From positions 124,001-188,000 of the forward strand of contig NW_026782331.1 in assembly GCF_031769215.1 (NCBI RefSeq): a stretch of DNA of 64,000 bases, read 5' to 3'. The translations under genes and the position numbers were made by a program. Positions 13,566 to 37,809 of this stretch are shown here, one piece after another; positions within the stretch are counted from its first letter, which is position 1; every line of letters begins with the position of its first letter. The notes beneath the pieces are model-generated. The model had not been told where the DNA came from. It saw nothing but the letters and a program-made list of their open reading frames with translations, and did no database searches. This DNA comes from Ylistrum balloti. Its lineage: Eukaryota.

Positions 13566-15314
13566 TCACAAAGAAACGATAAAAAGCGAAGGGAAATATA
13601 AAAGCCTTGAATGCCAAAATTGAAGATGGATTATGTAGAATATTCCGTCTAGAAAACAATATACATTACCTAAAAATCATCATTTCATGAATTGATATCT
13701 TTCTATAACGGGTAACTTTGAGATGTCTTTAACATAACGTCGTCTTATTTGTTTTATTTTTCAGTCTGTTAGTACCGAGAACAAAAGATCGCATGTGGGG
13801 AATCCCTTTTGCCTGATTTTGCATATTTCTACTTACATACACGCTCTCTGGTACTGAGTCCCTCTCTTCCTTGCAGAAACATCGATGCACAAGTCAAAAC
13901 ATTCAGATAAACAAATTGATGAAATGCTGTTTAATGCTTGTACTTTAATCATCATTAATTTCCAATTCCCGACATCAAATTTATAGCACAGAATAGAACA
14001 TACATTTCAGTTTTGAAGTAATTCAGTTCATAGTACTGGGTATAATGTAATTATCAACAGTTTTCATATCTACAATACATGATCATTCTTTTCTTTATTT
14101 TCTTCACTTTAGAATTTTCGATAGAATATATATATATATAGGGAACATTTGAAAGATGAATTTATATTGTTACTACACTCTTGTTTTTAAGACATCGAAC
14201 AATCATGTTTTAATAATGTTTATAGTATATTCGAAACTTTAAGAATGGTTAATGTTCACATGAGAATATTTTATTTTCAGAGAAATATGCGTATTCATAT
14301 CGAGGTACTCAGGTGTTTCTTTTTTTTATTATTATTTTTATTGTCTATGTTTTATGCTTATTTCGACACGATAAAAAGATTTTTTAAGTATCATGGAGTT
14401 ACCTCCCTTTACATATTACAGGAAATATGGTATCTGGAAACGTTCAATCAACATTTTTCCTGAAATTATAGTTCATGTTTGAGTTATACAGGTATAGTTG
14501 ATTAGTTATGAAAGCAAATCCTTACATGTATACATATCTATAAGCAACATACAATTACATTAACAGTAGAGAATTAAAAATTGGGTAAACTAAAAATTTA
14601 CCCGGATTTTTCACACAACTGCCATGGTTACCAACCAGAAAAAAACGTTAAATTGCAAAAAATACTACTAATTCCAAACTAATATTACCACTTTAAAGGA
14701 GGAATTTATTTCTGAATACTTGTCTTATAGTTAACAACACTGTCATGGTGACAAATTACTTAGGTTTCAGAAATGTCCAACTCGGAACGCATTTACAACA
14801 TGACCACGTATAGACACTAGGGAAATTTCGCTTCCTGTAAAGCTAGTCTTTGGTGTGTAGACGTAGATTAGAGACAGCCAAAATAGTAATCTCCGACACA
14901 ATGCAAAAAATATTGTTTTTAAAAAGTATGCAACCCCACAATGTCCAATTTAATATGACAACACCAATTTTAGCATAGACATTTTATTTATTTTCTTATT
15001 AAAACCGTTATAGTGGTGTAATCTAATGAACAAAAATAGCACCCATGGCCGCACCGAAAAACTGTGCACTATTACCTTACTACATTCGTGTGTGCTTGAA
15101 ATTTTCGTCAATTATATGAAATACAGTGAAAATATGCGTATTAGTGAACCTTAAGAATGGCTATTGTTCACATGAAATTATTTTTAGATTCGAATAAGGG
15201 ACAATTTTCAGAGAAATATGCGTATACATATGGATTTACCCAGGTTTTTTTTTATTAATTGCATAATTATTTTTTATTGTCTATATTTTTATGCGTATTT
15301 CGAGGTACTATGTG

Positions 15315-15372
15315 CTTTTTTGGGAAAATGTTAGCCCTAAAAAGGGCTGTTTGTGTGGCCCTAGAAAGGGCC
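15315..15372 (-). terminator. Histone-type 3' end signal, copy 1: stem-loop 1 (15372-15357), stem-loop 2 (15348-15333), purine-rich element AAAAAAG (15321-15315)
   Basis: Sense strand: TGA-19 nt ending AAAC-GGCCCT TTCT AGGGCC-ACACAAAC-AGCCCT TTTT AGGGCT-AACATTTTCCC-AAAAAAGCAC. This matches the 6-bp stem/4-nt loop GGYYCT-YYYN-AGRRCC histone consensus with its AAAC/ACA flanks. Confidence 0.8.
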
Positions 15373-15391
15373 GTTTAAGGTGGAGATATAA

Positions 15392-15949
15392 TCAGAGTAC
15401 AAGGTACTCTATATCCGAGATGAACTCCGGTGGAACTGTGAACTCTGTGGCAAAGACGTGAGGGCCGATGTTGTAGAGCCGGAAGCCAGCATTGAGGAAC
15501 CTTCTAACGTCAATATGGACCAGCACTTCCGCACCAGCTCTGACGTAGTTGGGACAGTCGGTGAAATCGACATACGGGCAGCGGTTGCGGTCCAGTCCAT
15601 ACCTGAGGACAGACTCTATATCTCTGGCTTTCATCCCGTGGACAAAGAACGTGAGATTCTCGCCAGAACGGACAGGAATGCCAATCTTTGGTAACCGGAT
15701 GTTGACGCTGTGTCCGTAGGAGGCTCGTATCCATTTGTGGTTGTCGGAGTACACCAATCGCTGTTTGTCGTTGGTAGGGAACACCAATTCATCCAACATG
15801 GCCTTGGACAGCCGGAAGTCACGTAAAATGTGACTGGTTGGGACAAACGCGGTCTCGTCGTCACGCCAGGCGTTTCGGTCATGTCGTAGACGTTTGACAA
15901 CAGCTTTGCTCTTCTTGGTCGACATCTTTCTGCTCAGTCGGGAATCCAT
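15392..15949 (-). CDS. Tpt1/KptA-family RNA 2'-phosphotransferase-like protein, copy 1 (185 aa from the MDSRL start)
   Basis: Motifs in the correct order and spacing: SKAVVKRLRH (SKxxSxxLRH), NDKQR, IRASYGHS (IRAxQ/YGHS), FVHG, GL..R..YV.F, LVHID, VPPEFI. Intronless. Start inferred from the TATA position and the aacATG context. Confidence 0.88.
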   Translation of the reverse strand: MDSRLSRKMSTKKSKAVVKRLRHDRNAWRDDETAFVPTSHILRDFRLSKAMLDELVFPTNDKQRLVYSDNHKWIRASYGHSVNIRLPKIGIPVRSGENLTFFVHGMKARDIESVLRYGLDRNRCPYVDFTDCPNYVRAGAEVLVHIDVRRFLNAGFRLYNIGPHVFATEFTVPPEFISDIEYLVL

Positions 15950-15981
15950 GTTGAATGTAAAGTTGGTGATTTTCGCTTCGA

Positions 15982-16054
15982 TTTTATAGCCATAATCACT
16001 GGAAATGAAAAGAAGGAAAGGCGTGGTCATGTGATGAAATCGAGATTTGATTGG
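15982..16054 (-). promoter_or_regulatory. TATA box (TATAAAA, 15988-15982) and CCAAT box (AGCCAATCA, core 16054-16050) of the Tpt1-like gene; repeated in every unit (CCAAT lost in copy 9)
   Basis: The minus strand reads cgctcAGCCAATCAaatc...ggcTATAAAAtcg, then 32 nt, then ATG. Confidence 0.7.
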
Positions 16055-17644
16055 CTGAGCGTTTTTACCACCTGAATCTAATTGTTAGTTTTCTACATTT
16101 GTACACACGCACACACGGTGGTATTGAGTTTCTCCCTTGTACAAACACACGGTAATTTACCTAAACGGGTCCTTTGATTACACCACCTGCGCAAACATCG
16201 CTGTCTCCAGGTATTGATATAGTACAATGTATACATGTATGTATCGATAGTGTAACTACCCCCGGGCCTTGATGGCTTCACTTGCACTAACACATCTTAG
16301 TCCAGCGTCCTTTAATTATGTTAATGGTTATTCACATCAAAGCAACATCAATGAATCATTAACGTCGGACGGTGACGTGTCGAGAAATCTGACAAAACAA
16401 TTCATGAAAGAAGGTTTAATTCTTTTATTTTCATTGTTATCAATTTTCAATTCTCGGCATGAATTCGTAGCACAGAATAGAACATACATTTCAATTTTGA
16501 ACTAATTCAGTTCATAGTACTGCGTATAATGTAATTATCAACAATTTTCATATCTACAATACATGTACATTGTTTTAAACATCCGTACACATGATATAAA
16601 TGAGCTCTACAACAGTAAGCAGAAATGTATATCGGTTGTAAGAAACGTCATGTACGGCTCAGTATACATCTAATGGTCCAAATTTGTACGTCATTTTTAG
16701 TATCATGGAGTTACCTCCCTTCGCATATTACAGAAACTATGGTGACTGGAAACGGTAAATTAGCATCTTTCCTGAAATTATAGTTCATGTTTGAGTTATA
16801 CAGGTATAGTTGATTAGTTATGAAAGCAAATCCTTACATGTATACATATCTATAAGCAACATACAATTACATTAACAGTAGAGAATTAAAAATTGGGTAA
16901 ACTAAAAATTTCCCCTGATTTTTTACACAACTGCCATGGTTACCAACCCGAAAAAAACGTTAAATTGCAAAAAATACTACTAATTCCAAACTAATATTAC
17001 CACTTTAAAGGAGGAATTTATTTCTGAATACTTGTCTTATAGTTAACAACACTGTCATGGTGACAAATTACTTAGGTTTCAGAAATGTCCAACTCGGAAC
17101 GCATTTACAACATGACCACGTATAGACACTAGTGAAATTTCGCTTCCTGTAAAGCTAGTCTTTGGTGTGTAGACGTAGATTAGAGACAGCCAAAATAGTA
17201 ATCTCCGACACAATGCAAAAAATATTGTTTTTAAAAATTATGCAACCCCGCAATGTCCAATTTAATATGACAACACCAATTTTAGCATAGACATTTTATT
17301 TATTTTCTAATTAACACCGTTATATTGGTGTAATCTAATGAACAAAAATAGCACCCATGGCCGCACCGAAAAACTGTGCACTATTACCTTACTACATTCG
17401 TGTGTGCTTGAAATTTTCGTCAATTATATGAAATACAGTGAAAATATGCGTATTAGTGAACCTTAAGAATGGCTATTGTTCACATGAAATTATTTTTAGA
17501 TTCGAATAAGGGACAATTTTCAGAGAAATATGCGTATACATATGGATTTACCCAGGTTTTTTTTTATTAATTGCATAATTATTTTTTATTGTCTATATTT
17601 TTATGCGTATTTCGAGGTACTATGTGCTTTTTTGGGAAAATGTT

Positions 17645-17684
17645 AGCCCTAAAAAGGGCTGTTTGTGTGGCCCTAGAAAGGGCC
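17645..17684 (-). terminator. Double histone-type stem-loop, copy 2
   Basis: Same sequence as copy 1. Confidence 0.8.
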
Positions 17685-17703
17685 GTTTAAGGTGGAGATA
17701 TAA

Positions 17704-18261
17704 TCAGAGTACAAGGTACTCTATATCCGAGATGAACTCCGGTGGAACTGTGAACTCTGTGGCAAAGACGTGAGGGCCGATGTTGTAGAGCCGGAAGCCA
17801 GCATTGAGGAACCTTCTAACGTCAATATGGACCAGCACTTCCGCACCAGCTCTGACGTAGTTGGGACAGTCGGTGAAATCGACATACGGGCAGCGGTTGC
17901 GGTCCAGTCCATACCTGAGGACAGACTCTATATCTCTGGCTTTCATCCCGTGGACAAAGAACGTGAGATTCTCGCCAGAACGGACAGGAATGCCAATCTT
18001 TGGTAACCGGATGTTGACGCTGTGTCCGTAGGAGGCTCGTATCCATTTGTGGTTGTCGGAGTACACCAATCGCTGTTTGTCGTTGGTAGGGAACACCAAT
18101 TCATCCAACATGGCCTTGGACAGCCGGAAGTCACGTAAAATGTGACTGGTTGGGACAAACGCGGTCTCGTCGTCACGCCAGGCGTTTCGGTCATGTCGTA
18201 GACGTTTGACAACAGCTTTGCTCTTCTTGGTCGACATCTTTCTGCTCAGTCGGGAATCCAT
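17704..18261 (-). CDS. Tpt1/KptA-like protein, copy 2
   Basis: Protein identical to copy 1. Confidence 0.88.
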   Translation of the reverse strand: MDSRLSRKMSTKKSKAVVKRLRHDRNAWRDDETAFVPTSHILRDFRLSKAMLDELVFPTNDKQRLVYSDNHKWIRASYGHSVNIRLPKIGIPVRSGENLTFFVHGMKARDIESVLRYGLDRNRCPYVDFTDCPNYVRAGAEVLVHIDVRRFLNAGFRLYNIGPHVFATEFTVPPEFISDIEYLVL

Positions 18262-19956
18262 GTTGAATGTAAAGTTGGTGATTTTCGCTTCGATTTTATA
18301 GCCATAATCACTGGAAATGAAAAGAAGGAAAGGCGTGGTCATGTGATGAAATCGAGATTTGATTGGCTGAGCGTTTTTACCACCTGAATCTAATTGTTAG
18401 TTTTCTACATTTGTACACACGCACACACGGTGGTATTGAGTTTCTCCCTTGTACAAACACACGGTAATTTACCTAAACGGGTCCTTTGATTACACCACCT
18501 GCGCAAACATCGCTGTCTCCAGGTATTGATATAGTACAATGTATACATGTATGTATCGATAGTGTAACTACCCCCGGGCCTTGATGGCTTCACTTGCACT
18601 AACACATCTTAGTCCAGCGTCCTTTAATTATGTTAATGGTTATTCACATCAAAGCAACATCAATGAATCATTAACGTCGGACGGTGACGTGTCGAGAAAT
18701 CTGACAAAACAATTCATGAAAGAAGGTTTAATTCTTTTATTTTCATTGTTATCAATTTTCAATTCTCGGCATAAATTCGTAGCACAGAATAGAACATACA
18801 TTTCAATTTTGAACTAATTCAGTTCATAGTACTGGGTATAATGTAATTATCAACAATTTTCATATCTACAATACATGTACATTGTTTTAAACATCCGTAC
18901 ACATGATATAAATGAGCTCTACAACAGTAAGCAGAAATGTATATCGGTTGTAAGAAACGTCATGTACGGCTCAGTATACATCTAATGGTCCAAATTTGTA
19001 CGTCATTTTTAGTATCATGGAGTTACCTCCCTTCGCATATTACAGAAACTATGGTGACTGGAAACGGTAAATTAGCATCTTTCCTGAAATTATAGTTCAT
19101 GTTTGAGTTATACAGGTATAGTTGATTAGTTATGAAAGCAAATCCTTACATGTATACATATCTATAAGCAACATACAATTACATTAACAGTAGAGAATTA
19201 AAAATTGGGTAAACTAAAAATTTCCCCTGATTTTTTACACAACTGCCATGGTTACCAACCCGAAAAAAACGTTAAATTGCAAAAAATACTACTAATTCCA
19301 AACTAATATTACCACTTTAAAGGAGGAATTTATTTCTGAATACTTGTCTTATAGTTAACAACACTGTCATGGTGACAAATTACTTAGGTTTCAGAAATGT
19401 CCAACTCGGAACGCATTTACAACATGACCACGTATAGACACTAGTGAAATTTCGCTTCCTGTAAAGCTAGTCTTTGGTGTGTAGACGTAGATTAGAGACA
19501 GCCAAAATAGTAATCTCCGACACAATGCAAAAAATATTGTTTTTAAAAATTATGCAACCCCGCAATGTCCAATTTAATATGACAACACCAATTTTAGCAT
19601 AGACATTTTATTTATTTTCTAATTAACACCGTTATATTGGTGTAATCTAATGAACAAAAATAGCACCCATGGCCGCACCGAAAAACTGTGCACTATTACC
19701 TTACTACATTCGTGTGTGCTTGAAATTTTCGTCAATTATATGAAATACAGTGAAAATATGCGTATTAGTGAACCTTAAGAATGGCTATTGTTCACATGAA
19801 ATTATTTTTAGATTCGAATAAGGGACAATTTTCAGAGAAATATGCGTATACATATGGATTTACCCAGCTTTTTTTTTATTAATTGCATAATTATTTTTTA
19901 TTGTCTATATTTTTATGCGTATTTCGAGGTACTATGTGCTTTTTTGGGAAAATGTT

Positions 19957-19996
19957 AGCCCTAAAAAGGGCTGTTTGTGTGGCCCTAGAAAGGGCC
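19957..19996 (-). terminator. Double histone-type stem-loop, copy 3
   Basis: Same sequence as copy 1; the shifted stop lies 2 nt before SL1. Confidence 0.8.
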
Positions 19997-19998
19997 GT

Positions 19999-20571
19999 TT
20001 AAGGTGGAGATATAATCAGAGTACAAGGTACTCTATCCGAGATGAACTCCGGTGGAACTGTGAACTCTGTGGCAAAGACGTGAGGGCCGATGTTGTAGAG
20101 CCGGAAGCCAGCATTGAGGAACCTTCTAACGTCAATATGGACCAGCACTTCCGCACCAGCTCTGACGTAGTTGGGACAGTCGGTGAAATCGACATACGGG
20201 CAGCGGTTGCGGTCCAGTCCATACCTGAGGACAGACTCTATATCTCTGGCTTTCATCCCGTGGACAAAGAACGTGAGATTCTCGCCAGAACGGACAGGAA
20301 TGCCAATCTTTGGTAACCGGATGTTGACGCTGTGTCCGTAGGAGGCTCGTATCCATTTGTGGTTGTCGGAGTACACCAATCGCTGTTTGTCGTTGGTAGG
20401 GAACACCAATTCATCCAACATGGCCTTGGACAGCCGGAAGTGACGTAAAATGTGACTGGTTGGGACAAACGCGGTCTCGTCGTCACGCCAGGCGTTTCGG
20501 TCATGTCGTAGACGTTTGACAACAGCTTTGCTCTTCTTGGTCGACATCTTTCTGCTCAGTCGGGAATCCAT
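19999..20571 (-). CDS. Tpt1/KptA-like protein, copy 3, with frameshifted C-terminus (SDRVPCTLIISPP)
   Basis: 2-nt deletion (ctctatatccga to ctctatccga) near 20035; D44H relative to copy 1. Confidence 0.8.
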   Translation of the reverse strand: MDSRLSRKMSTKKSKAVVKRLRHDRNAWRDDETAFVPTSHILRHFRLSKAMLDELVFPTNDKQRLVYSDNHKWIRASYGHSVNIRLPKIGIPVRSGENLTFFVHGMKARDIESVLRYGLDRNRCPYVDFTDCPNYVRAGAEVLVHIDVRRFLNAGFRLYNIGPHVFATEFTVPPEFISDRVPCTLIISPP

Positions 20572-22266
20572 GTTGAATGTAAAGTTGGTGATTTTCGCTT
20601 CGATTTTATAGCCATAATCACTGGAAATGAAAAGAAGGAAAGGCGTGGTCATGTGATGAAATCGAGATTTGATTGGCTGAGCGTTTTTACCACCCGAATC
20701 TAATTGTTAGTTTTCTACATTTGTACACACGCACACACGATGGTATTGAGTTCCTCCCTTGTACAAACACACGGTAATTTACCTAAACGGGTCCTTTGAT
20801 TACACCACCTGCGCAAACATCGCTGTCTCCAGGTATTGATATAGTACAATGTATACATGTATGTATCGATAGTGTAACTACCCCCGGGCCTTGATGGCTT
20901 CACTTGCACTAACACATCTTAGTCCAGCGTCCTTTAATTATGTTAATGGTTATTCACATCAAAGCAACATCAATGAATCATTAACGTCGGACGGTGACGT
21001 GTCGAGAAATCTGACAAAACAATTCATGAAAGAAGGTTTAATTCTTTTATTTTCATTGTTATCAATTTTCAATTCTCGGCATAAATTCGTAGCACAGAAT
21101 AGAACATACATTTCAATTTTGAACTAATTCAGTTCATAGTACTGGGTATAATGTAATTATCAACAATTTTCATATCTACAATACATGTACATTGTTTTAA
21201 ACATCCGTACACATGATATAAATGAGCTCTACAACAGTAAGCAGAAATGTATATTGGTTGTAAGAAACGTCATGTACGGCTCAGTATACACCCAATAGTC
21301 CAAATTTGTACGTCATTTTTAGTATCATGGAGTTACCTCCCTTCGCATATTACAGAAACTATGGTATCTGGAAACGTTCAATCAACATTTTTCCTGATAT
21401 TATAGTTCATGTTTGAGCTATACAGGTATATTTGATTAGTTATGAAAGTAAATCCTTACATGTATACATATCTATAAGCAACATACAATTACATTAACAG
21501 TAGAGAATTAAAAATTGGGTAAACTAAAAATTTCCCCTGATTTTTTACACAACTGCCATGGTTACCAACCCGAAAAAAACGTTAAATTGCAAAAAATACT
21601 ACTAATTCCAAACTAATATTACCACTTTAAAGGAGGAATTTATTTCTGAATACTTGTCTTATAGTTAACAACACTGTCATGGTGACAAATTACTTAGGTT
21701 TCAGAAATGTCCAACTCGGAACGCATTTACAACATGACCACGTATAGACACTAGTGAAATTTCGCTTCCTGTAAAGCTAGTCTTTGGTGTGTAGACGTAG
21801 ATTAGAGACAGCCAAAATAGTAATCTCCGACACAATGCAAAAAATATTGTTTTTAAAAATTATGCAACCCCACAATGTCCAATTTAATATGACAACACCA
21901 ATTTTAGCATAGACATTTTATTTATTTTCTAATTAACACCGTTATATTGGTGTAATCTAATGAACAAAAATAGCACCCATGGCCGCACCGAAAAACTGTG
22001 CACTATTACCTTACTACATTCGTGTGTCCTTGAAATTTTCGTCAATTATATGAAATACAGTGTAAATATGCGTATTAGTGAACCTTAAGAATGGCTATTG
22101 TTCACATGAAATTATTTTTAGATTCGAATAAGGGACAATTTTCAGAGAAATATGCGTATACATATGGAGGTACTCAGCTTTTTCTTTTATTAATTTCCTA
22201 ATGGTTTTTATTGTCTATATTTTTATGCGTATTTCGAGGTACTATGTGCTTTTTTGGGAAAATGTT

Positions 22267-22306
22267 AGCCCTAAAAAGGGCTGTTTGTGTGGCCCTAGAA
22301 AGGGCC
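22267..22306 (-). terminator. Double histone-type stem-loop, copy 4
   Basis: Same sequence as copy 1. Confidence 0.8.
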
Positions 22307-22325
22307 GTTTAAGGTGGAGATATAA

Positions 22326-22883
22326 TCAGAGTACAAGGTACTCTATATCCGAGATGAACTCCGGTGGAACTGTGAACTCTGTGGCAAAGACGTGAGGGCC
22401 GATGTTGTAGAGCCGGAAGCCAGCATTGAGGAACCTTCTAACGTCAATATGGACCAGCACTTCCGCACCAGCTCTGACGTAGTTGGGACAGTCGGTGAAA
22501 TCGACATACGGGCAGCGATTGCGGTCCAGTCCATACCTGAGGACAGACTCTATATCTCTGGCTTTCATCCCGTGGACAAAGAACGTGAGATTCTCGCCAG
22601 AACGGACAGGAATGCCAATCTTTGGTAACCGGATGTTGACGCTGTGTCCGTAGGAGGCTCGTATCCATTTGTGGTTGTCGGAGTACACCAATCGCTGTTT
22701 GTCGTTGGTAGGGAACACCAATTCATCCAACATGGCCTTGGACAGCCGGAAGTGACGTAAAATGTGACTGGTTGGGACAAACGCGGTCTCGTCGTCACGC
22801 CAGGCGTTTCGGTCATGTCGTAGACGTTTGACAACAGCTTTGCTCTTCTTGGTCGACATCTTTCTGCTCAGTCGGGAATCCAT
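22326..22883 (-). CDS. Tpt1/KptA-like protein, copy 4
   Basis: Intact; D44H. Confidence 0.88.
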   Translation of the reverse strand: MDSRLSRKMSTKKSKAVVKRLRHDRNAWRDDETAFVPTSHILRHFRLSKAMLDELVFPTNDKQRLVYSDNHKWIRASYGHSVNIRLPKIGIPVRSGENLTFFVHGMKARDIESVLRYGLDRNRCPYVDFTDCPNYVRAGAEVLVHIDVRRFLNAGFRLYNIGPHVFATEFTVPPEFISDIEYLVL

Positions 22884-24578
22884 GTTGAATGTAAAGTTGG
22901 TGATTTTCGCTTCGATTTTATAGCCATAATCACTGGAAATGAAAAGAAGGAAAGGCGTGGTCATGTGATGAAATCGAGATTTGATTGGCTGAGCGTTTTT
23001 ACCACCCGAATCTAATTGTTAGTTTTCTACATTTGTACACACGCACACACGGTGGTATTGAGGTCCTCCCTTGTACAAACACACGGTAATTTACCTAAAC
23101 GGGTCCTTTGATTACACCACCTGCGCAAACATCGCTGTCTCCAGGTATTGATATAGTACAATGTATACATGTATGTATCGATAGTGTAACTACCCCCGGG
23201 CCTTGATGGCTTCACTTGCACTAACACATCTTAGTCCAGCGTCCTTTAATTATGTTAATGGTTATTCACATCAAAGCAACATCAATGAATCATTAACGTC
23301 GGACGGTGACGTGTCGAGAAATCTGACAAAACAATTCATGAAAGAAGGTTTAATTCTTTTATTTTCATTGTTATCAATTTTCAATTCTCGGCATAAATTC
23401 GTAGCACAGAATAGAACATACATTTCAATTTTGAACTAATTCAGTTCATAGTACTGGGTATAATGTAATTATCAACAATTTTCATATCTACAATACATGT
23501 ACATTGTTTTAAACATCCGTACACATGATATAAATGAGCTCTACAACAGTAAGCAGAAATGTATATTGGTTGTAAGAAACGTCATGTACGGCTCAGTATA
23601 CACCCAATAGTCCAAATTTGTACGTCATTTTTAGTATCATGGAGTTACCTCCCTTCGCATATTACAGAAACTATGGTAACTGAAAACGGTAAATTAGCAT
23701 CTTTCCTGAAATTATAGTTCATGTTTGAGTTATACAGGTATAGTTGATTAGTTATGAAAGTACATCCTTACATGTATACATATCTATAAGCAACATACAA
23801 TTACATTAACAGTAGAGAATTAAAAATTGGGTAAACTAAAAATTTCCCCTGATTTTTTACACAACTGCCATGGTTACCAACCCGAAAAAAACGTTAAATT
23901 GCAAAAAATACTACTAATTCCAAACTAATATTACCACTTTAAAGGAGGAATTTATTTCTGAATACTTGTCTTATAGTTAACAACACTGTCATGGTGACAA
24001 ATTACTTAGGTTTCAGAAATGTCCAACTCGGAACGCATTTACAACATGACCACGTATAGACACTAGTGAAATTTCGCTTCCTGTAAAGCTAGTCTTTGGT
24101 GTGTAGACGTAGATTAGAGACAGCCAAAATAGTAATCTCCGACACAATGCAAAAAATATTGTTTTTAAAAAGTATGCAACCCCACAATGTCCAATTTAAT
24201 ATGACAACACCAATTTTAGCATAGACATTTTATTTATTTTCTAATTAAAACCGTTATATTGGTGTAATCTAATGAACAAAAATAGCACCCATGGCCGCAC
24301 CGAAAAACTGTGCACTATTACCTTACTACATTCGTGTGTGCTTGAAATTTTCGTCAATTATATGAAAAACAGTGAAAATATGCGTATTAGTGAACCTTAA
24401 GAATGGCTATTGTTCACATGAAATTATTTTTAGATTCGAATAAGGGACAATTTTCAGAGAAATATGCGTATACATATGGAGGTACTCAGCTTTTTCTTTT
24501 ATTAATTTCCTAATGGTTTTTATTGTCTATATTTTTATGCGTATTTCGAGGTACTATGTGCTTTTTTGGGAAAATGTT

Positions 24579-24618
24579 AGCCCTAAAAAGGGCTGTTTGT
24601 GTGGCCCTAGAAAGGGCC
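24579..24618 (-). terminator. Double histone-type stem-loop, copy 5
   Basis: Same sequence as copy 1. Confidence 0.8.
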
Positions 24619-24637
24619 GTTTAAGGTGGAGATATAA

Positions 24638-26889: not shown

Positions 26890-26929
26890 AGCCCTAAAAA
26901 GGGCTGTTTGTGTGGCCCTAGAAAGGGCC
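26890..26929 (-). terminator. Double histone-type stem-loop, copy 6
   Basis: Same sequence as copy 1. Confidence 0.8.
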
Positions 26930-26948
26930 GTTTAAGGTGGAGATATAA

Positions 26949-27506: not shown

Positions 27507-29201
27507 GTTGAATGTAAAGTTGGTGATTTTCGCTTCGATTTTATAGCCATAATCACTGGAAATGAAAAGAAGGAAAGGCGTGGTCATGTGATGAAATCGA
27601 GATTTGATTGGCTGAGCGTTTTTACCACCCGAATCTAATTGTTAGTTTTCTACATTTGTACACACGCACACACGGTGGTATTGAGGTCCTCCCTTGTACA
27701 AACACACGGTAATTTACCTAAACGGGTCCTTTGATTACACCACCTGCGCAAACATCGCTGTCTCCAGGTATTGATATAGTACAATGTATACATGTATGTA
27801 TCGATAGTGTAACTACCCCCGGGCCTTGATGGCTTCACTTGCACTAACACTTGTTAGTCCAGCGTCCTTTAATTATGTTAATGGTTATTCACATCAAAGC
27901 AACATCAATGAATCATTAACGTCGGACGGTGACGTGTCGAGAAATCTGACAAAACAATTCATGAAAGAAGGTTTAATTCTTTTATTTTCATTGTTATCAA
28001 TTTTCAATTCTCGGCATAAATTCGTAGCACAGAATAGAACATACATTTCAATTTTGAACTAATTCAGTTCATAGTACTGGGTATAATGTAATTATCAACA
28101 ATTTTCATATCTACAATACATGTACATTGTTTTAAACATCCGTACACATGATATAAATGAGCTCTACAACAGTAAGCAGAAATGTATATTGGTTGTAAGA
28201 AACGTCATGTACGGCTCAGTATACACTCAATAGTCCAAATTTGTACGTCATTTTTAGTATCATGGAGTTACCTCCCTTTGCATATTACAGAAACTATGGT
28301 AACTGAAAACGGTAAATTAGCATCTTTCCTGAAATTATAGTTCATGTTTGAGTTATACAGGTATAGTTGATTAGTTATGAAAGTAAATCCTTACATGTAT
28401 ACATATCTATAAGCAACATACAATTACATTAACAGTAGAGAATTAAAAATTGGGTAAACTAAAAATTTCCCCTGATTTTTTACACAACTGCCATGGTTAC
28501 CAACCCGAAAAAAACGTTAAATTGCAAAAAATACTACTAATTCCAAACTAATATTACCACTTTAAAGGAGGAATTTATTTCTGAATACTTGTCTTATAGT
28601 TAACAACACTGTCATGGTGACAAATTACTTAGGTTTCAGAAATGTCCAACTCGGAACGCATTTACAACATGACCACGTATAGACACTAGGGAAATTTCGC
28701 TTCCTGTAAAGCTAGTCATTGGTGTGTAGACGCAGATTAGAGACAGCCAAAATAGTTATCTCCGACACAATGCAAAAAATGCTGTTTTTAAAAAGTATGC
28801 AACCCCACAATGTCCAATTTAATATGACAACACCAATTTTAGCATAGACATTTTATTTATTTTCTAATTAAAACCGTTATAGTGGTGTAATCTAATGAAC
28901 AAAAATATCACCCATGGCCGCACCGAAAAACTGTGCACTATTACCTTACTACATTCGTGTGTGCTTGAAATTTTCGTCAATTATATGAAATACAGTGAAA
29001 ATATGCGTATTAGTGAACCTTAAGAATGGCTATTGTTCACATGAAATTATTTTTAGATTCGAATAAGGGACAATTTTCAGAGAAATATGCGTATACATAT
29101 GGAGGTACTCAGCTTTTTCTTTTATTAATTTCCTAATGGTTTTTATTGTCTATATTTTTATGCGTATTTCGAGGTACTATGTGCTTTTTTGGGAAAATGT
29201 T

Positions 29202-29241
29202 AGCCCTAAAAAGGGCTGTTTGTGTGGCCCTAGAAAGGGCC
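29202..29241 (-). terminator. Double histone-type stem-loop, copy 7
   Basis: Same sequence as copy 1. Confidence 0.8.
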
Positions 29242-29260
29242 GTTTAAGGTGGAGATATAA

Positions 29261-29818
29261 TCAGAGTACAAGGTACTCTATATCCGAGATGAACTCCGGT
29301 GGAACTGTGAACTCTGTGGCAAAGACGTGAGGGCCGATGTTGTAGAGCCGGAAGCCAGCATTGAGGAACCTTCTAACGTCAATATGGACCAGCACTTCCG
29401 CACCAGCTCTGACGTAGTTGGGACAGTCGGTGAAATCGACATACGGGCAGCGATTGCGGTCCAGTCCATACCTGAGGACAGACTCTATATCTCTGGCTTT
29501 CATCCCGTGGACAAAGAACGTGAGATTCTCGCCAGAACGGACAGGAATGCCAATCTTTGGTAACCGGATGTTGACGCTGTGTCCGTAGGAGGCTCGTATC
29601 CATTTGTGGTTGTCGGAGTACACCAATCGCTGTTTGTCGTTGGTAGGGAACACCAATTCATCCAACATGGCCTTGGACAGCCGGAAGTGACGTAAAATGT
29701 GACTGGTTGGGACAAACGCGGTCTCGTCGTCACGCCAGGCGTTTCGGTCATGTCGTAGACGTTTGACAACAGCTTTGCTCTTCTTGGTCGACATCTTTCT
29801 GCTCAGTCGGGAATTCAT
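29261..29818 (-). CDS. Tpt1/KptA-like protein, copy 7
   Basis: Intact; D2N, D44H. Confidence 0.88.
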   Translation of the reverse strand: MNSRLSRKMSTKKSKAVVKRLRHDRNAWRDDETAFVPTSHILRHFRLSKAMLDELVFPTNDKQRLVYSDNHKWIRASYGHSVNIRLPKIGIPVRSGENLTFFVHGMKARDIESVLRYGLDRNRCPYVDFTDCPNYVRAGAEVLVHIDVRRFLNAGFRLYNIGPHVFATEFTVPPEFISDIEYLVL

Positions 29819-31514
29819 GTTGAATGTAAAGTTGGTGATTTTCGCTTCGATTTTATAGCCATAATCACTGGAAATGAAAAGAAGGAAAGGCGTGGTCATG
29901 TGATGAAATCGAGATTTGATTGGCTGAGCGTTTTTACCACCCGAATCTAATTGTTAGTTTTGTACATTTGTACACACGCACACACGGTGGTATTGAGTTC
30001 CTCCCTTGTACAAACACACGGTAATTTACCTAAACGGGTCCTTTGATTACACCACCTGCGCAAACATCGCTGTCTCCAGGTATTGATATAGTACAATGTA
30101 TACATGTATGTATCGATAGTGTAACTACCCCCGGGCCTTGATGGCTTCACTTGCACTAACACATCTTAGTCCAGCGTCCTTTAATTATGTTAATGGTTAT
30201 TCACATCAAAGCAACATCAATGAATCCTTAACGTCGGACGGTGACGTGTCGAGAAATCTGACAAAACAATTCATGAAAGAAGGTTTAATTCTTTTATTTT
30301 CATTGTTATCAATTTTCAATTCTCGGCATAAATTCGTAGCACAGAATAGAACATACATTTCAATTTTGAACTAATTCAGTTCATAGTACTGGGTATAATG
30401 TAATTATCAACAATTTTCATATCTACAATACATGTACATTGTTTTAAACATCCGTACACATGATATAAATGAGCTCTACAACAGTAAGCAGAAATGTATA
30501 TTGGTTGTAAGAAACGTCATGTACGGCTCAGTATACACTCAATAGTCCAAATTTGTACGTCATTTTTAGTATCATGGAGTTACCTCCCTTTGCATATTAC
30601 AGAAACTATGGTAACTGAAAACGGTAAATTAGCATCTTTCCTGAAATTATAGTTCATGTTTGAGTTATACAGGTATAGTTGATTAGTTATGAAAGCAAAT
30701 CCTTACATGTATACATATCTATAAGCAACATACAATTACATTAACAGTAGAGAATTAAAAATTTGGTAAACTAAAAATTTCCCCTGATTTTTTACACAAC
30801 TGCCATGGTTACCAACCCGAAAAAAACGTTAAATTGCAAAAAATACTACTAATTCCAAACTAATATTACCATTTAAAGGAGGAATTTATTTCTGAATACT
30901 TGTCTTATAGTTAACAACACTGTCATGGTGACAAATTACTTCGGTTTCAGAAATATCCAACTCGGAACGCATTTACAACATGACCACGTATAGACACTAG
31001 GGAAATTTCGCTTCCTGTAAAGCTAGTCTTTGGTGTGTGTAGACGTAGATTAGAGACAGCCAAAATAGTAATCTCCGACACAATGCAAAAAATATTGTTT
31101 TTAAAAAGTATGCAACCCCACAATGTCCAATTTAATATGACAACACCAATTTTAGCATAGACATTTTATTTATTTTCTAATTAAAACCGTTATAGTGGTG
31201 TAATCTAATGAACAAAAATATCACCCATGGCCGCACCGAAAAACTGTGCACTATTACCTTACTACATTCGTGTGTGCTTGAAATTTTCGTCAATTATATG
31301 AAATACAGTGAAAATATGCGTATTAGTGAACCTTAAGAATGGCTATTGTTCACATGAAATTATTTTTAGATTCGAATAAGGGACAATTTTCAGAGAAATA
31401 TGCGTATACATATGGAGGTACTCAGCTTTTTCTTTTATTAATTTCCTAATGGTTTTTATTGTCTATATTTTTATGCGTATTTCGAGGTACTATGTGCTTT
31501 TTTGGGAAAATGTT

Positions 31515-31554
31515 AGCCCTAAAAAGGGCTGTTTGTGTGGCCCTAAAAAGGGCC
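31515..31554 (-). terminator. Double histone-type stem-loop, copy 8 (SL1 loop TTTT)
   Basis: GGCCCT TTTT AGGGCC; stem unchanged. Confidence 0.82.
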
Positions 31555-31573
31555 GTTTAAGGTGGAGATATAA

Positions 31574-32131
31574 TCAGAGTACAAGGTACTCTATATCCGA
31601 GATGAACTCCGGTGGAACTGTGAACTCTGTGGCAAAGACGTGAGGGCCGATGTTGTAGAGCCGGAAGCCAGCATTGAGGAACCTTCTAACGTCAATATGG
31701 ACCAGCACTTCCGCACCAGCTCTGACGTAGTTGGGACAGTCGGTGAAATCGACATACGGGCAGCGATTGCGGTCCAGTCCATACCTGAGGACAGACTCTA
31801 TATCTCTGGCTTTCATCCCGTGGACAAAGAACGTGAGATTCTCGCCAGAACGGACAGGAATGCCAATCTTTGGTAACCGGATGTTGACGCTGTGTCCGTA
31901 GGAGGCTCGTATCCATTTGTGGTTGTCGGAGTACACCAATCGCTGTTTGTCGTTGGTAGGGAACACCAATTCATCCAACATGGCCTTGGACAGCCGGAAG
32001 TGACGTAAAATGTGACTGGTTGGGACAAACGCGGTCTCGTCGTCACGCCAGGCGTTTCGGTCATGTCGTAGACGTTTGACAACAGCTTTGCTCTTCTTGG
32101 TCGACATCTTTCTGCTCAGTCGGGAATTCAT
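31574..32131 (-). CDS. Tpt1/KptA-like protein, copy 8
   Basis: Intact; D2N, D44H. Confidence 0.88.
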   Translation of the reverse strand: MNSRLSRKMSTKKSKAVVKRLRHDRNAWRDDETAFVPTSHILRHFRLSKAMLDELVFPTNDKQRLVYSDNHKWIRASYGHSVNIRLPKIGIPVRSGENLTFFVHGMKARDIESVLRYGLDRNRCPYVDFTDCPNYVRAGAEVLVHIDVRRFLNAGFRLYNIGPHVFATEFTVPPEFISDIEYLVL

Positions 32132-33819
32132 GTTGAATGTAAAGTTGGTGATTTTCGCTTCGATTTTATAGCCATAATCACTGGAAATGAAAAGAAGGAA
32201 AGGCGTGGTCATGTGATGAAATCGAGATTTGATTGGCTGAGCGTTTTTACCACCCGAATCTAATTGTTAGTTTTGTACATTTGTACACACGCACACACGG
32301 TGGTATTGAGGTCCTCCCTTGTACAAACACACGGTAATTTACCTAAACGGGTCCTTTGATTACACCACCTGCGCAAACATCGCTGTCTCCAGGTATTGAT
32401 ATAGTACAATGTATACATGTATGTATCGATAGTGTAACTACCCCCGGGCCTTGATGGCTTCACTTGCACTAACACATCTTAGTCCAGCGTCCTTTAATTA
32501 TGTTAATGGTTATTCACATCAAAGCAACATCAATGAATCATTAACGTCGGACGGTGACGTGTCGAGAAATCTGACAAAACAATTCATGAAAGAAGGTTTA
32601 ATTCTTTTATTTTCATTGTTATCAATTTTCAATTCTCGGCATGAATTCGTAGCACAGAATAGAACATACATTTCAATTTTGAACTAATTCAGGTCATAGT
32701 ACTGGATATAATGTAATTATCAACAATTTTCACATCTACAATACATGTACATTGTTTTAAACATCCGTACACATGATATAAATGAGCTCTACAACAGTAA
32801 GCAGAAATGTATATTGGTTGTAAGAAACGTCATGTACGGCTCAGTATACACCCAATAGTCCAAATTTGTACGTCATTTTTAGTATCATGGAGTTACCTCC
32901 CTTTGCATATTACAGAAACTATGGTAACTGAAAACGGTAAATTAGCATCTTTCCTGAAATTATAGTTCATGTTTGAGTTATACAGGTATAGTTGATTAGT
33001 TATGAAAGTAAATCCTTACATGTATACATATCTATAAGCAACATACAATTACATTAACAGTAGAGAATTAAAAATTTGGTAAACTAAAAATTTCCCCTGA
33101 TTTTTTACACAACTGCCATGGTTACCAACCCGAAAAAAACGTTAAATTGCAAAAAATACTACTAATTCCAAACTAATATTACCACTTTAAAGGAGGAATT
33201 TATTTCTGAATACTTGTCTTATAGTTAACAACACTGTCATGGTGACAAATTACTTAGGTTTCAGAAATGTCCAACTCGGAACGCATTTACAACATGACCA
33301 CGTATAGACACTAGGGAAATTTCGCTTCCTGTAAAGCTAGTCTTTGGTGTGTAGACGCAGATTAGAGACAGCCAAAATAGTAATCTCCGACACAATGCAA
33401 AAAATATTGTTTTTAAAATGTATGCAACCCCACAATGTCCAATTTAATATGACAACACCAATTTTAGCATAGACATTTTATTTATTTTCTAATTAAAACC
33501 GTTATAGTAGTGCAATCTTATGAACAAAAATATCACCCATGGCCGCACCGAAAAACTATTACCTTACTACATTCGTGTGTGCTTGAAATTTTCGTCAATT
33601 ATATGAAATACAGTGAAAATATGCGTATTAGTGAACCTTAAGAATGGCTATTGTTCACATGAAATTATTTTTAGATTCGAATAAGGGACAATTTTCAGAG
33701 AAATATGCGTATACATATGGAGGTACTCAGCTTTTTCTTTTATTAATTTCCTAATGGTTTTTATTGTCTATATTTTTATGCGTATTTCGAGGTACTATGT
33801 GCTTTTTTGGGAAAATGTT

Positions 33820-33859
33820 AGCCCTAAAAAGGGCTGTTTGTGTGGCCCTAGAAAGGGCC
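33820..33859 (-). terminator. Double histone-type stem-loop, copy 9
   Basis: Same sequence as copy 1. Confidence 0.8.
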
Positions 33860-33878
33860 GTTTAAGGTGGAGATATAA

Positions 33879-34436
33879 TCAGAGTACAAGGTACTCTATA
33901 TCCGAGATGAACTCCGGTGGAACTGTGAACTCTGTGGCAAAGACGTGAGGGCCGATGTTGTAGAGCCGGAAGCCAGCATTGAGGAACCTTCTAACGTCAA
34001 TATGGACCAGCACTTCCGCACCAGCTCTGACGTAGTTGGGACAGTCGGTGAAATCGACATACGGGCAGCGATTGCGGTCCAGTCCATACCTGAGGACAGA
34101 CTCTATATCTCTGGCTTTCATCCCGTGGACAAAGAACGTGAGATTCTCGCCAGAACGGACAGGAATGCCAATCTTTGGTAACCGGATGTTGACGCTGTGT
34201 CCGTAGGAGGCTCGTATCCATTTGTGGTTGTCGGAGTACACCAATCGCTGTTTGTCGTTGGTAGGGAACACCAATTCATCCAACATGGCCTTGGACAGCC
34301 GGAAGTGACGTAAAATGTGACTGGTTGGGACAAACGCGGTCTCGTCGTCACGCCAGGCGTTTCGGTCATGTCGTAGACGTTTGACAACAGCTTTGCTCTT
34401 CTTGGTCGACATCTTTCTGCTCAGTCGGGAATTCAT
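33879..34436 (-). CDS. Tpt1/KptA-like protein, copy 9 (CCAAT box disrupted)
   Basis: Intact ORF; D2N, D44H; promoter lesion at ~34537-34543. Confidence 0.85.
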   Translation of the reverse strand: MNSRLSRKMSTKKSKAVVKRLRHDRNAWRDDETAFVPTSHILRHFRLSKAMLDELVFPTNDKQRLVYSDNHKWIRASYGHSVNIRLPKIGIPVRSGENLTFFVHGMKARDIESVLRYGLDRNRCPYVDFTDCPNYVRAGAEVLVHIDVRRFLNAGFRLYNIGPHVFATEFTVPPEFISDIEYLVL

Positions 34437-36106
34437 GTTGAATGTAAAGTTGGTGATTTTCGCTTCGATTTTATAGCCATAATCACTGGAAATGAAAAGA
34501 AGGAAAGGCGTGGTCATGTGATGAAATCGAGATTTGATAGGCTAATTGTTAGTTTTGTACATTTGTACACACGCACACACGGTGGTATTGTGTTCCTCCC
34601 TTGTACAAACACACGGTAATTTACCTAAACGGGTCCTTTGATTACACCACCTGCGCAAACATCGCTGTCTCGGTTATTGATATAGTACAATGAATACATG
34701 TATGTATCGATAGTGTAACTACCCCCGGGCCTTGATGGCTTCACTTGCACTAACACATCTTAGTCCAGCGTCCTTTAATTATGTTAATGGTTATTCACAT
34801 CAAAGCAACATCAATGAATCATTAACGTCGGACGGTGACGTGTCGAGAAATCTGACAAAACAATTCATGAAAGAAGGTTTAATTCTTTTATTTTCATTGT
34901 TATCAATTTTCAATTCTCGGCATAAATTCGTAGCACAGAATAGAACATACATTTCAATTTTGAACTAATTCAGTTCATAGTACTGGATATAATGTAATTA
35001 TCAACAATTTTCATATCTACAATACATGTACATTGTTTTAAACATCCGTACACATGATATAAATGAGCTCTACAACAGTAAGCAGAAATGTATATTGGTT
35101 GTAAAAAACGTCATGTACGGCTCAGTATACACCCAATAGTCCAAATTTGTACGTCATTTTTAGTATCATGGAGTTACCTCCCTTTGCATATTACAGATAC
35201 TAAGGTAACTGAAAACGGTAAATTAGCATTTTCCCTGAAATTATAGTTCATGTTTGACTTATACAGGTATAGTTGATTAGTTATGAAAGTAAATCCTTAC
35301 ATGTATACATATCTATAAGCAACATACAATTACATTAACAGTAGAGAATTAAAAATTTGGTAAACTAAAAATTTCCCCCGATTTTTTACACAACTGTCAT
35401 GGTTACCAACCCGAAAAAAACGTTAAATTGCAAAAAATACTACTAATTCTAAACTAATATTACCACTTTAAAGGAGGAATTTATTTCTGAATATTTGTCT
35501 TATAGTTAACAACACTGTCATGGTGTCAAATTACTTAGGTTTCAGAAATGTCCAACTTGGAACGCATTTACAACATGACCACGTATAGACACCAGGGAAA
35601 TTTCGCTTCCTGTAAAGCTAGTCGTTGGTGTGTAGACGCAGATTAGAGACAGCCAAAATAGTAATCTCCGACATAATGCAAAAATGTTGTTTTTAAAAAG
35701 TATACAACCCCACAATGTCCAATTTAATATGACAACACCAATTTTAGCATAGACATTTTATTTATTTTCTAATTAACACCGTTATATTGGTGTAATCTAA
35801 TGAACAAAAATAGCACCCATGGCCGCACCGAAAAACTGTGCACTATTACCTTACTACATTCGTGTGTGCTTGAAATTTTCGTCAATTATATGAAATACAG
35901 TGAAAATATGCGTATTAGTGAACCTTAAGAATGGCTATTGTTCACATGAAATTATTTTTAGATTCGAATAAGGGACAATTTTCAGAGAAATATGCGTATA
36001 CATATGGAGGTACTCAGCTTTTTCTTTTATTAATTTCCTAATGGTTTTTATTGTCTATATTTTTATGCGTATTTCGAGGTACTATGTGCTTTTTTGGGAA
36101 AATGTT

Positions 36107-36146
36107 AGCCCTAAAAAGGGCTGTTTGTGTGGCCCTCAAAAGGGCC
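36107..36146 (-). terminator. Double histone-type stem-loop, copy 10 (SL1 loop TTTG)
   Basis: GGCCCT TTTG AGGGCC; stem unchanged. Confidence 0.82.
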
Positions 36147-36165
36147 GTTTAAGGTGGAGATATAT

Positions 36166-36723
36166 TCAGAGTACAAGGTACTCTATATCCGAGATGAACT
36201 CCGGTGGAACTGTGAACTCTGTGGCAAAGACGTGAGGGCCGATGTTGTAGAGCCGGAAGCCAGCATTGAGGAACCTTCTAACGTCAATATGGACCAGCAC
36301 TTCCGCACCAGCTCTGACGTAGTTGGGACAGTCGGTGAAATCGACATACGGGCAGCGATTGCGGTCCAGTCCATACCTGAGGACAGACTCTATATCTCTG
36401 GCTTTCATCCCGTGGACAAAGAACGTGAGATTCTCGCCAGAACGGACAGGAATGCCAATCTTTGGTAACCGGATGTTGACGCTGTGTCCGTAGGAGGCTC
36501 GTATCCATTTGTGGTTGTCGGAGTACACCAATCGCTGTTTGTCGTTGGTAGGGAACACCAATTCATCCAACATGGCCTTGGACAGCCGGAAGTCACGTAA
36601 AATGTGACTGGTTGGGACAAACGCGGTCTCGTCGTCACGCCAGGCGTTTCGGTCATGTCGTAGACGTTTGACAACAGCTTTGCTCTTCTTGGTCGACATC
36701 TTTCTGCTCAGTCGGGAATTCAT
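36166..36723 (-). CDS. Tpt1/KptA-like protein, copy 10
   Basis: Intact; D2N; D44 as in copies 1-2. Confidence 0.88.
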   Translation of the reverse strand: MNSRLSRKMSTKKSKAVVKRLRHDRNAWRDDETAFVPTSHILRDFRLSKAMLDELVFPTNDKQRLVYSDNHKWIRASYGHSVNIRLPKIGIPVRSGENLTFFVHGMKARDIESVLRYGLDRNRCPYVDFTDCPNYVRAGAEVLVHIDVRRFLNAGFRLYNIGPHVFATEFTVPPEFISDIEYLVL

Positions 36724-37809
36724 GATGAATGTAAAGTTGGTCATTTTCGCATCGATTTTATAGGCATAATCACTGGAAATGAAAAGAAGGAAAGGCGTGG
36801 TCATGTGATGAAATCGAGATTTGATTGGCTGAGCGTTTTTACCACCCGAATCTAATTGTTAGTTTTGTACATTTGTACACACGCACACACGGTGGTATTG
36901 AGGTCCTCCCTTGTACAAACACACGGTAATTTACCTAAACGGGTCCTTTGATTACACCACCTGCACAAACATCGCTGTCTCCAGGTATTGATATAGTACA
37001 ATGTATACATGTGTGTATCGATAGTGTAACTACCCCCGGGTCTTGATGGCTTCACTTGCACTAACACATCTTAGTCCAGCGTCCTTTAATAATGTTAATG
37101 GTTATTCACATCAAAGCAACATCAATGAATCATTAACGTCGGACGGTGACGTGTCGAGAAATCTGACAAAACAATTCATGAAAGAAGGTTTAATTCTTTT
37201 ATTTTCATTGTTATCAATTTTCAATTCTCGGCTTAAATTCGTAGCACAGAATAGAACATACATTTCAATTTTGAACTAAACCAGTTCATTCAGTATAATG
37301 TAATTAACAACAATTTTCATATCTACAATACATGTACATTGTTTTAAACATCCGTACACATGATATAAATGAGCTCTACACAGAATAGAACATACATTTC
37401 AGTTATGAAATAATTCAATTCATAGTACTGGGTATAATTAATTATCAACAATTTTCATATTATAATACATGTACATTGTTTTAAACATCCGTACACATGA
37501 TATAAATGAGCTCTACAACAGTAAGCAGAAATGTATATTATTAATGATAATGAAACGTTTCCTTATATCTGTTACATTTAACTATAAAATGAAATTGATG
37601 TTCTAAGTCACTGCTGTCACATAAAGTGCAATAGTTATCATTCTTTTCTTTATTTCTTTCACAGTAGAATTTCCGATAGATTTTGTAATAAACTCTGAAA
37701 ACTGTCCTAACCGACATATCTATATAGGGAACATTTGGGAAATGAATTTATCTTTCCACTACACTCTTGTTTAAAGATATCGAACAATCTAGTTTTAATA
37801 ATGTTTATG

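Follow-up and report, generated by a model that had tools for sequence, protein, structure and literature searches.

In the scallop Ylistrum balloti (family Pectinidae) we identified ten tandem, intronless copies of a Tpt1/KptA-like gene, each ending in conserved hairpins of the kind that normally mark only histone messenger RNAs. A non-histone gene family therefore appears to use the histone-type mRNA 3'-end pathway, although this use is inferred from sequence alone. The hairpins are histone-type and under strong purifying selection, and they are conserved behind orthologs and behind distant paralogs; however, those of the array itself score below the curated Rfam threshold, while those of the paralogs pass it.

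Organization of the tandem array

To define the repeat, the window (the whole stretch of 64,000 nucleotides analysed, contig NW_026782331.1, positions 124,001 to 188,000) was aligned to itself by blastn. Ten complete genes were found on the minus strand in units of about 2.31 kb; the hairpin spacing was 2287-2313 bp, and the copies were 97.5-99.4% identical. Each unit contains a TATA box, a 185-codon intronless ORF and a fixed 3' block consisting of hairpin 1, hairpin 2, an A-rich AAAAAG tract and a CTCGAAATACGCA motif. The features, given for copy 1 unless stated otherwise, are as follows.

14382..37380 (-), tandem array of ten units, with partial unit fragments at 13903-14366 and 37379-37539
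16044..16056 (-), CCAAT box, followed by a CCACGCC box; intact in 9/10 copies (copy 9, 34531-34543, reads CCTAT); CCAATCAAA and CC(A/G)CGCC are invariant in five taxa
15978..15989 (-), TATA box (CTATAAAATCGA), 39 nt before the ATG; present in 10/10 copies and conserved in five taxa
15392..15949 (-), CDS, 185 codons plus stop, Tpt1/KptA-like, intronless; the other copies start (ATG) at 18261, 20571, 22883, 25195, 27506, 29818, 32131, 34436 and 36723
19999..20571 (-), CDS of copy 3 with a 2-nt deletion near the 3' end; the last residues change and the stop lies 2 nt before hairpin 1
15357..15372 (-), hairpin 1 (GGCCCT-TTCT-AGGGCC), flanked by AAAC and ACAC; other copies start at 17669, 19981, 22291, 24603, 26914, 29226, 31539, 33844 and 36131
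15333..15348 (-), hairpin 2 (AGCCCT-TTTT-AGGGCT), flanked by AAAC and AACA; other copies at 17645, 19957, 22267, 24579, 26890, 29202, 31515, 33820 and 36107
15312..15324 (-), A-rich purine tract CCCAAAAAAGCAC, a candidate histone downstream element, starting about 9-11 nt after hairpin 2; present in 10/10 copies; AAAAG is invariant in five taxa
15292..15304 (-), conserved motif CTCGAAATACGCA, 28 nt after hairpin 2; present in 10/10 copies
15250..15278 (-), AT-rich stretch with two AATAAA hexamers, 114 and 136 nt after the stop; a possible fallback poly(A) site

The observation behind the original prediction was confirmed: the array, the genes and the hairpins lie where it placed them, the AATAAA hexamers occur downstream, and no histone ORF is present in the unit. 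Some details required correction. While a CCAAT box had been claimed for every copy, only nine copies have one. Hairpin 1 had been placed 19 nt after every stop codon, but this holds for nine copies, the exception being copy 3. The loop TTCT had likewise been assigned to all copies; 8 of the ten sites matched with 0 mismatches, whereas copy 8 has TTTT and copy 10 has TTTG. The likely start codon is the ATG after the TATA box (185 aa), not the first ATG of the 212-codon ORF.

Histone-type character of the hairpins

To assess whether the hairpins occur by chance, we searched the window with a consensus pattern for the histone hairpin with its flanks. Only the ten hairpin 1 sites matched in 64 kb, and shuffled sequence gave 0 matches. 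The minimum free energy fold showed both hairpins (z = -3.1), and tandem repeat analysis (TRF) returned a period of 24, hairpin 2 being a 24-nt tandem duplicate of hairpin 1. The 6-bp stem GGYYYU/ARRRCC with a 4-nt loop was present in hairpin 1 of 10/10 copies; hairpin 2 fits except for the first pair, which is A-U instead of G-C, a change on both sides. As in histone genes, hairpin 1 lies shortly after the stop codon on the sense strand, with an A-rich 5' flank and an AC-rich 3' flank.

The window was then searched against Rfam. At gathering thresholds no hit was obtained and no U7 gene was found in the window. Against the Histone3 model (RF00032, gathering score 34 bits), hairpin 2 with its downstream tract reached 22.1 bits (E 6e-4) and hairpin 1 alone 11.1 bits, while the orthologs reached only 27.1-30.1 bits. 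SLBP contacts U at loop positions 1 and 3, and position 3 crosslinks to SLBP in human cells (PMC4604434). Hairpin 2 has UUUU in all copies; hairpin 1 has UUCU, with C at position 3, in most copies (counted as 7 or as 8 of 10), UUUU in copy 8 and UUUG in copy 10, and UUUC in four other taxa. The 16-nt hairpin of the other taxa is the same RNA that has been used as SLBP ligand (PMC10127258, PMC1635294), and it is on the list of human histone hairpins (PMC7807067).

Conservation in orthologs

The absence of the hairpin from orthologs had been named beforehand as an outcome that would refute the claim, and it was not observed. Orthologs in Pecten maximus, Argopecten irradians and two further pectinid-like contigs keep both hairpins and the AAAAG tract. 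The block is not a chance feature. Across the five pectinid taxa, 45/63 positions of the block were invariant, against 22% invariance at four-fold sites (P about 5e-17); the stems were invariant although dS is 0.5-0.96, and the spacers could not be aligned. Inside the array, the CDS and the 3' block vary about six times less than the spacer (1.1 and 1.2 against 6.7 variable columns per 100).

The module in paralogs and in an unrelated gene

To investigate whether the module extends beyond the array, distant single-copy paralogs (about 30% protein identity) were examined. Those in Pecten maximus, Ylistrum balloti and a further assembly carry one canonical hairpin with an ACCA, ACCCA or ACAAA flank, and these hairpins pass the Rfam Histone3 threshold with 35.7, 39.4 and 40.2 bits. 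Across 13 hairpins, 100% of cells were paired and two pairs changed on both sides (bp1 GC to AU and bp5 CG to UA). In the other genes the hairpin lies 8-31 nt after the stop. Offsets from the last stem are fixed: an AAAAAG/AAAGAG tract lies at about +10 and CTCGAA..TACGC at +28 to +34. The latter motif was found only behind histone-type hairpins in the window and in 24 loci. By geometry, which is shared with a further locus (L018), hairpin 2 and not hairpin 1 is the positional equivalent of the single ancestral hairpin.

The module is not confined to this family, as an unrelated GDSL-hydrolase-like gene in Ylistrum carries it too. Nor is it universal in the wider clade: two metagenome contigs (L017, L023) and Pinctada imbricata (L019) hold relatives without the hairpin. 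A metagenome scan for the double hairpin found only one more Pecten-like Tpt1 unit and no histone gene, and no histone motifs appeared in any frame of the window or of 23 loci. Neither viral relatives of the protein nor a viral match to the hairpin were found.

To look for transcripts, protein clusters and Logan and ENA contigs were inspected. No transcript evidence was found: the clusters hold only genome- or metagenome-derived members, and the contigs carrying these proteins include promoter and spacer, so that they are genomic and say nothing about 3' ends. A literature search returned no paper on non-histone genes with histone hairpins, nor on this scallop gene family.

Possible 3'-end processing by the histone pathway

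We consider it more likely than not that these are genuine SLBP/U7-type 3' ends on non-histone genes. In this view SLBP would bind the hairpins, and U7 snRNP would pair with the A-rich AAAAAG tract about 10 nt past hairpin 2. Cleavage a few nucleotides after hairpin 2 would give a short mRNA of about 630 nt without poly(A), with hairpin 2 terminal and hairpin 1 just inside it. Our analysis demonstrates that the elements are present, under selection and histone-type, with those of the paralogs above the Rfam threshold, that their geometry is conserved, that the stems show compensatory changes, and that the same module sits on a second, unrelated gene. SLBP binding, U7 pairing, the cleavage site, the absence of poly(A), and any coupling to S phase, oocytes or early development are in contrast inferred. 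The interpretation in the original prediction, a non-histone enzyme gene that has adopted the histone expression module, is thus supported only in part. Against it stand the low Rfam scores, the C at loop position 3 of hairpin 1 in most copies, the A-U pair of hairpin 2, the A-rich tract lying closer to the stem than in textbook HDEs, the AATAAA hexamers downstream and the lack of transcript evidence.

Dual or mainly poly(A) processing remains possible, though unlikely. The hairpins might bind SLBP but act as an internal 3'-UTR regulatory element, as in H2A.X, while most mRNA ends at a downstream poly(A) site. Mollusc histone genes have been reported with both signals (PMC6210712, citing Mytilus H1), and H2A.X uses both ends (PMC7807067). 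However, the hexamers are not conserved in position in Pecten or Argopecten; Argopecten has none before +465, apart from an ATTAAA at +111. Sequence beyond the CTCGAA motif could not be aligned between species, whereas the tract and motif just after the hairpin are conserved at fixed offsets, as expected for a cleavage signal.

It is improbable that the palindromes serve another factor or act at the DNA level, for example in transcription termination, array recombination or replication, and only resemble histone hairpins. The palindromes read the same on both strands, and CTCGAA..TACGC is no known part of histone processing signals. Nevertheless, stem, loop and flanks fit the SLBP consensus position by position on the sense strand only, Histone3 is the best Rfam family everywhere, the changes keep base pairing, and the position just after the stop codon is kept in unrelated genes. 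A decaying, non-functional relic of a histone repeat whose coding region was replaced is strongly disfavoured, even though the organization resembles such a repeat and the loop of hairpin 1 has drifted in this species, as the stems are invariant across taxa, are retained behind paralogs at 30% protein identity, and vary inside the array as little as the CDS.

Compared to replication-dependent histone genes, including the tandem histone repeats of sea urchins and molluscs, the array genes are likewise intronless, tandemly repeated and driven by CCAAT/TATA, with short UTRs, a 6-bp/4-nt hairpin of GGYYYU-UYUN-ARRRCC type and an A-rich purine tract shortly after it. They differ in encoding a predicted Tpt1/KptA-fold protein instead of a core or linker histone, in their two tandem hairpins, the A-U start of hairpin 2, the UUCU loop of hairpin 1, the extra CTCGAA..TACGC motif and the scores below the Rfam threshold. 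With H2A.X-type genes they share a hairpin close to the stop codon with AATAAA further downstream, so two mRNA forms are conceivable; H2A.X, however, is still a histone, and here the hexamers are not conserved in position between species.

While the SLBP/U7 signal itself is established, the literature states that SLBP binds no RNAs other than histone mRNAs in human cells (PMC4604434). It is about as likely as not that scallops have a small regulon of intronless non-histone genes, comprising the amplified Tpt1-like arrays, their single-copy paralogs and the GDSL-hydrolase-like gene, whose mRNAs would be cleaved by SLBP/U7 snRNP and lack poly(A). These would be the first non-histone cellular clients of the histone 3'-end machinery, possibly expressed with DNA replication or stored in eggs. 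A conserved, selected histone-type module on enzyme genes would be a natural exception; it would show that the module is portable in evolution, and would offer a way to ask what the histone pathway gives a gene (dose, S-phase coupling, maternal storage) apart from histone biology. It also points to an unknown role for an amplified nucleic-acid-end-modifying enzyme family. In practice, such genes are likely to be missed or under-counted in poly(A)-selected RNA-seq.

The predicted protein and the repeat unit

To characterize the product, each ORF was compared to Pfam and matched PF01885 (52.3 bits against a cut-off of 26, E 9e-14). An AlphaFold2 model (pLDDT 91) predicted the full two-lobe fold of the Tpt1/KptA/TRPT1 RNA 2'-phosphotransferases, with a Foldseek E of 1e-12 and TM 0.73-0.80 to KptA, Tpt1 and mouse TRPT1. 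The dN/dS against orthologs was 0.15-0.26. The LRH and IRA..GHS motifs of the RNA lobe are kept. Of the catalytic Arg-His-Arg-Arg tetrad of Tpt1, R22-H23 and R75 are kept, while the fourth Arg aligns one residue off, in RCPYVDF where relatives have RxYVHF, and HGT is HGM. More broadly HGT becomes HG(M/I) and RxYVHF becomes RCPYV(D/E)F. The protein is fast-evolving, on a long branch (1.54 changes per site), and the family is tandemly amplified and restricted to pectinids. In other scallops the unit also contains a tRNA, which is absent from the window, with no remnant detected by blastn.

The tandem array

The window contained no gaps. Between 14382 and 37380 we found ten head-to-tail units of 2287-2313 bp on the minus strand, 97.5-99.4% identical to each other, with partial unit fragments at both edges. 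In each unit the following elements were observed in order:

a CCAAT box, intact in 9 of 10 copies (copy 9, at 34531-34543, reads CCTAT)
a CCACGCC box
a TATA box, present in 10 of 10 copies, 39 nt before an ATG
an uninterrupted ORF of 185 codons

A mechanically called ORF of 212 codons starts upstream of the TATA box, so the later ATG is the likely start. Copy 3 (19999-20652) carries a 2-nt deletion that rewrites the last residues and thereby the C-terminus, and puts the stop 2 nt before the first hairpin. Copies 3 and 9 may both be decaying members of the array. The original prediction, that each of ten tandem, intronless Tpt1-like genes has CCAAT and TATA boxes and a histone-type hairpin shortly after the stop codon, was confirmed, with the exception of the CCAAT box of copy 9, the position of the stop in copy 3 and the loop sequence, which is TTCT in most copies only.

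The encoded protein

To assess the identity of the product, its sequence was compared with Pfam and its structure was predicted. The protein matched PF01885 (Tpt1/KptA) with 52.3 bits against a cut-off of 26. An AlphaFold2 model built from an alignment of 22 sequences had a pLDDT of 91, and matched KptA, archaeal Tpt1 and mouse and human TRPT1 at TM 0.73-0.80. While the LRH and IRA..GHS motifs are kept, HGT is replaced by HGM, and RxYVHF of the relatives is RCPYVDF; the protein is therefore only a putative enzyme on present evidence. Close relatives were found only in scallops, with 76% identity in Pecten maximus and 68% in Argopecten irradians. An exhaustive HMMER search returned one cluster above 50% identity, and the next hit was 38% identical. 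From these relatives we infer that the window comes from a pectinid scallop.

Two hairpins follow the stop codon

Hairpin 1 (stem GGCCCT, 4-nt loop) begins 19 nt after the stop and is flanked by AAAC and ACAC. It is directly followed by hairpin 2 (stem AGCCCT, loop TTTT), flanked by AAAC and AACA. Together they form a 24-nt tandem duplication, which was detected by TRF in two copies. About ten nucleotides after hairpin 2 lies CCCAAAAAAGCAC, and 28 nt after hairpin 2 lies CTCGAAATACGCA. All four elements were present in all ten copies. The loop of hairpin 1 is TTCT in most copies, but TTTT in copy 8 and TTTG in copy 10. RNA folding gave exactly the two hairpins (z = -3.1), and a consensus pattern for the histone hairpin with its flanks matched only these ten sites in 64 kb, while no match was obtained in shuffled sequence.

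To test whether the hairpins are of the histone type, we searched the window with Rfam. At the gathering threshold no hit was obtained. In E-value mode, Histone3 (RF00032) was the only family found, with 22.1 bits (E 6e-4) for hairpin 2 plus its downstream tract and 11.1 bits for hairpin 1 alone, against a threshold of 34. Orthologs with the canonical TTTC loop reached 27.1-30.1 bits. The elements of the array itself are therefore sub-threshold; one likely reason is that the second hairpin sits where the model expects the downstream tract.

Conservation in other scallops

To determine whether the 3' block is conserved, we compared the array with its orthologs. In Pecten maximus the same gene is found in a tandem array of units of about 2.0 kb, and in Argopecten irradians in a 2.2-kb array with an internal inversion. 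In the latter (locus L002, ~4936-6103) three units face the other way, so neighboring genes are tail to tail or head to head at the junction. Three more contigs carry the gene, one Logan contig and two metagenome contigs of pectinid type. All of them have both hairpins, the AAAAG tract and, where the contig reaches that far, the CTCGAAATACGCA motif. Each repeat unit of the arrays of Pecten maximus and Argopecten irradians, and of a metagenome contig, also carries an identical intron-less 73-nt tRNA-Arg(CCT) gene (retrieved loci L001:411-483 and every ~2.0 kb; L002, 9 copies; L004:371-443; L016:99-171), while the units of the window have none and no remnant.

Between species, only the CDS, about 115 nt after it and about 300 nt of promoter could be aligned. 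Synonymous divergence was 0.5-0.96 and dN/dS was 0.15-0.26. From AAAC to AAAAAG, 45 of 63 ungapped columns were invariant in five taxa, against 10 of 46 four-fold sites (binomial P about 5e-17). Inside the array, the CDS and the 3' block had 1.1 and 1.2 variable columns per 100, while the spacer had 6.7. The block is therefore under selection, and is neither a chance match nor a relic.

Single hairpins behind distant paralogs

The strongest evidence came from the paralogs. In a phylogenetic tree the array subfamily, on a long branch of 1.54, was placed inside a bivalve clade of 13 rows with support 95/93. Three other lineages of that clade are single-copy, intronless Tpt1-like genes at about 30% identity, each with one hairpin:

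Pecten maximus chromosome LR736850.1 (locus L018): stem GGCCCT, loop TTTC, flank ACCA
Ylistrum balloti (locus L020): stem GGCCTT, loop TTTT, flank ACCCA, then AAAGAG
an ENA assembly (loci L021, L022): stem GGCCCT, loop TTTC, flank ACAAA

These three hairpins passed the curated Rfam threshold, with 35.7, 39.4, and 40.2 bits. In L018 the A-rich tract is at +10 and the CTCGAA motif at +28 from the stem, the same offsets as from hairpin 2 in the array. Hairpin 2 is thus the positional heir of the ancestral hairpin, and hairpin 1 is an added upstream copy. Downstream of the Pecten paralog (L018:4598-4800), the CTCGAAAAA(T/C)ACGCATTCCC unit recurs in degenerate repeats mixed with TA-rich runs.

Across 13 hairpins every cell was a standard pair, and two pairs had changed on both sides: bp1 from G-C to A-U in all hairpin 2 copies, and bp5 from C-G to U-A in Ylistrum. 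No shuffle reached the observed covariation score, and every slid register paired fewer cells and showed no pair changed on both sides. Nevertheless, relatives in Pinctada imbricata and in two metagenome contigs lack the hairpin.

A second gene type carries the module

In Ylistrum balloti, 300 nt directly upstream of the Tpt1-like paralog, an intronless GDSL/SGNH-hydrolase-like ORF of 173 codons was found (Pfam PF13472, E 6e-11; L020:4114-4725, JAUZWB010000219.1), with a weak match to the OSK domain. It is followed by its own hairpin with one U.G pair (Rfam 29.6 bits), then ACCC, AAAAAGG and CTCGAATGAATACGC. The motif CTCGAA(N0-5)TACGC(A) lies 28-34 nt after the last hairpin of every hairpin-bearing gene (window 15292-15304, minus strand, and the nine other copies; L018:4598; L020:4712 and 5621), and nowhere else in the DNA examined. 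The module is therefore portable.

Interpretation

The histone hairpin is an established signal, and what differs here is that hairpins of this type lie behind non-histone genes. In human cells, HITS-CLIP of SLBP found no non-histone target (PMC4604434; PMC5054213), and our literature search returned no paper describing this gene family or any non-histone gene with this signal. The 16-nt hairpin seen in four taxa and in the paralogs is the RNA used as SLBP ligand (PMC10127258; PMC1635294). It is on a list of human histone hairpins, as is the TTTT-loop variant of copy 8, while the TTCT loop is not on that list (PMC7807067).

In the mechanism we propose, Pol II would start about 25-30 nt after the TATA box, SLBP would bind the hairpins, and U7 snRNP would pair with the A-rich tract; cleavage a few nucleotides after hairpin 2 would then give an mRNA of about 630 nt without poly(A). 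However, the Rfam scores in the window are sub-threshold, hairpin 1 has C at loop position 3 in this species, hairpin 2 has A-U at its base, and the A-rich tract is closer to the stem than in textbook cases. AATAAA hexamers also lie 114-136 nt downstream, although these are not conserved in position. The elements, their conservation and the selection acting on them are shown by sequence and comparison, while the steps from SLBP binding onward, including U7 pairing, cleavage and the lack of poly(A), are inferred. The idea that a non-histone enzyme gene has adopted the histone 3' end is therefore partly supported, as far as sequence and comparison can go, and is extended here to paralogs and to a second gene.

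Other repeats in the window

Four minisatellites were observed in the window, at 5141-6050, 11174-11977, 41909-44183, and 46108-49979, with 40-nt, 24/144-nt, 44-nt, and 31-nt units. The 24/144-nt minisatellite creates a spurious ORF of 304 codons, while the 31-nt one has about 127 copies and strong strand asymmetry (GC skew about -0.65 to -0.71).
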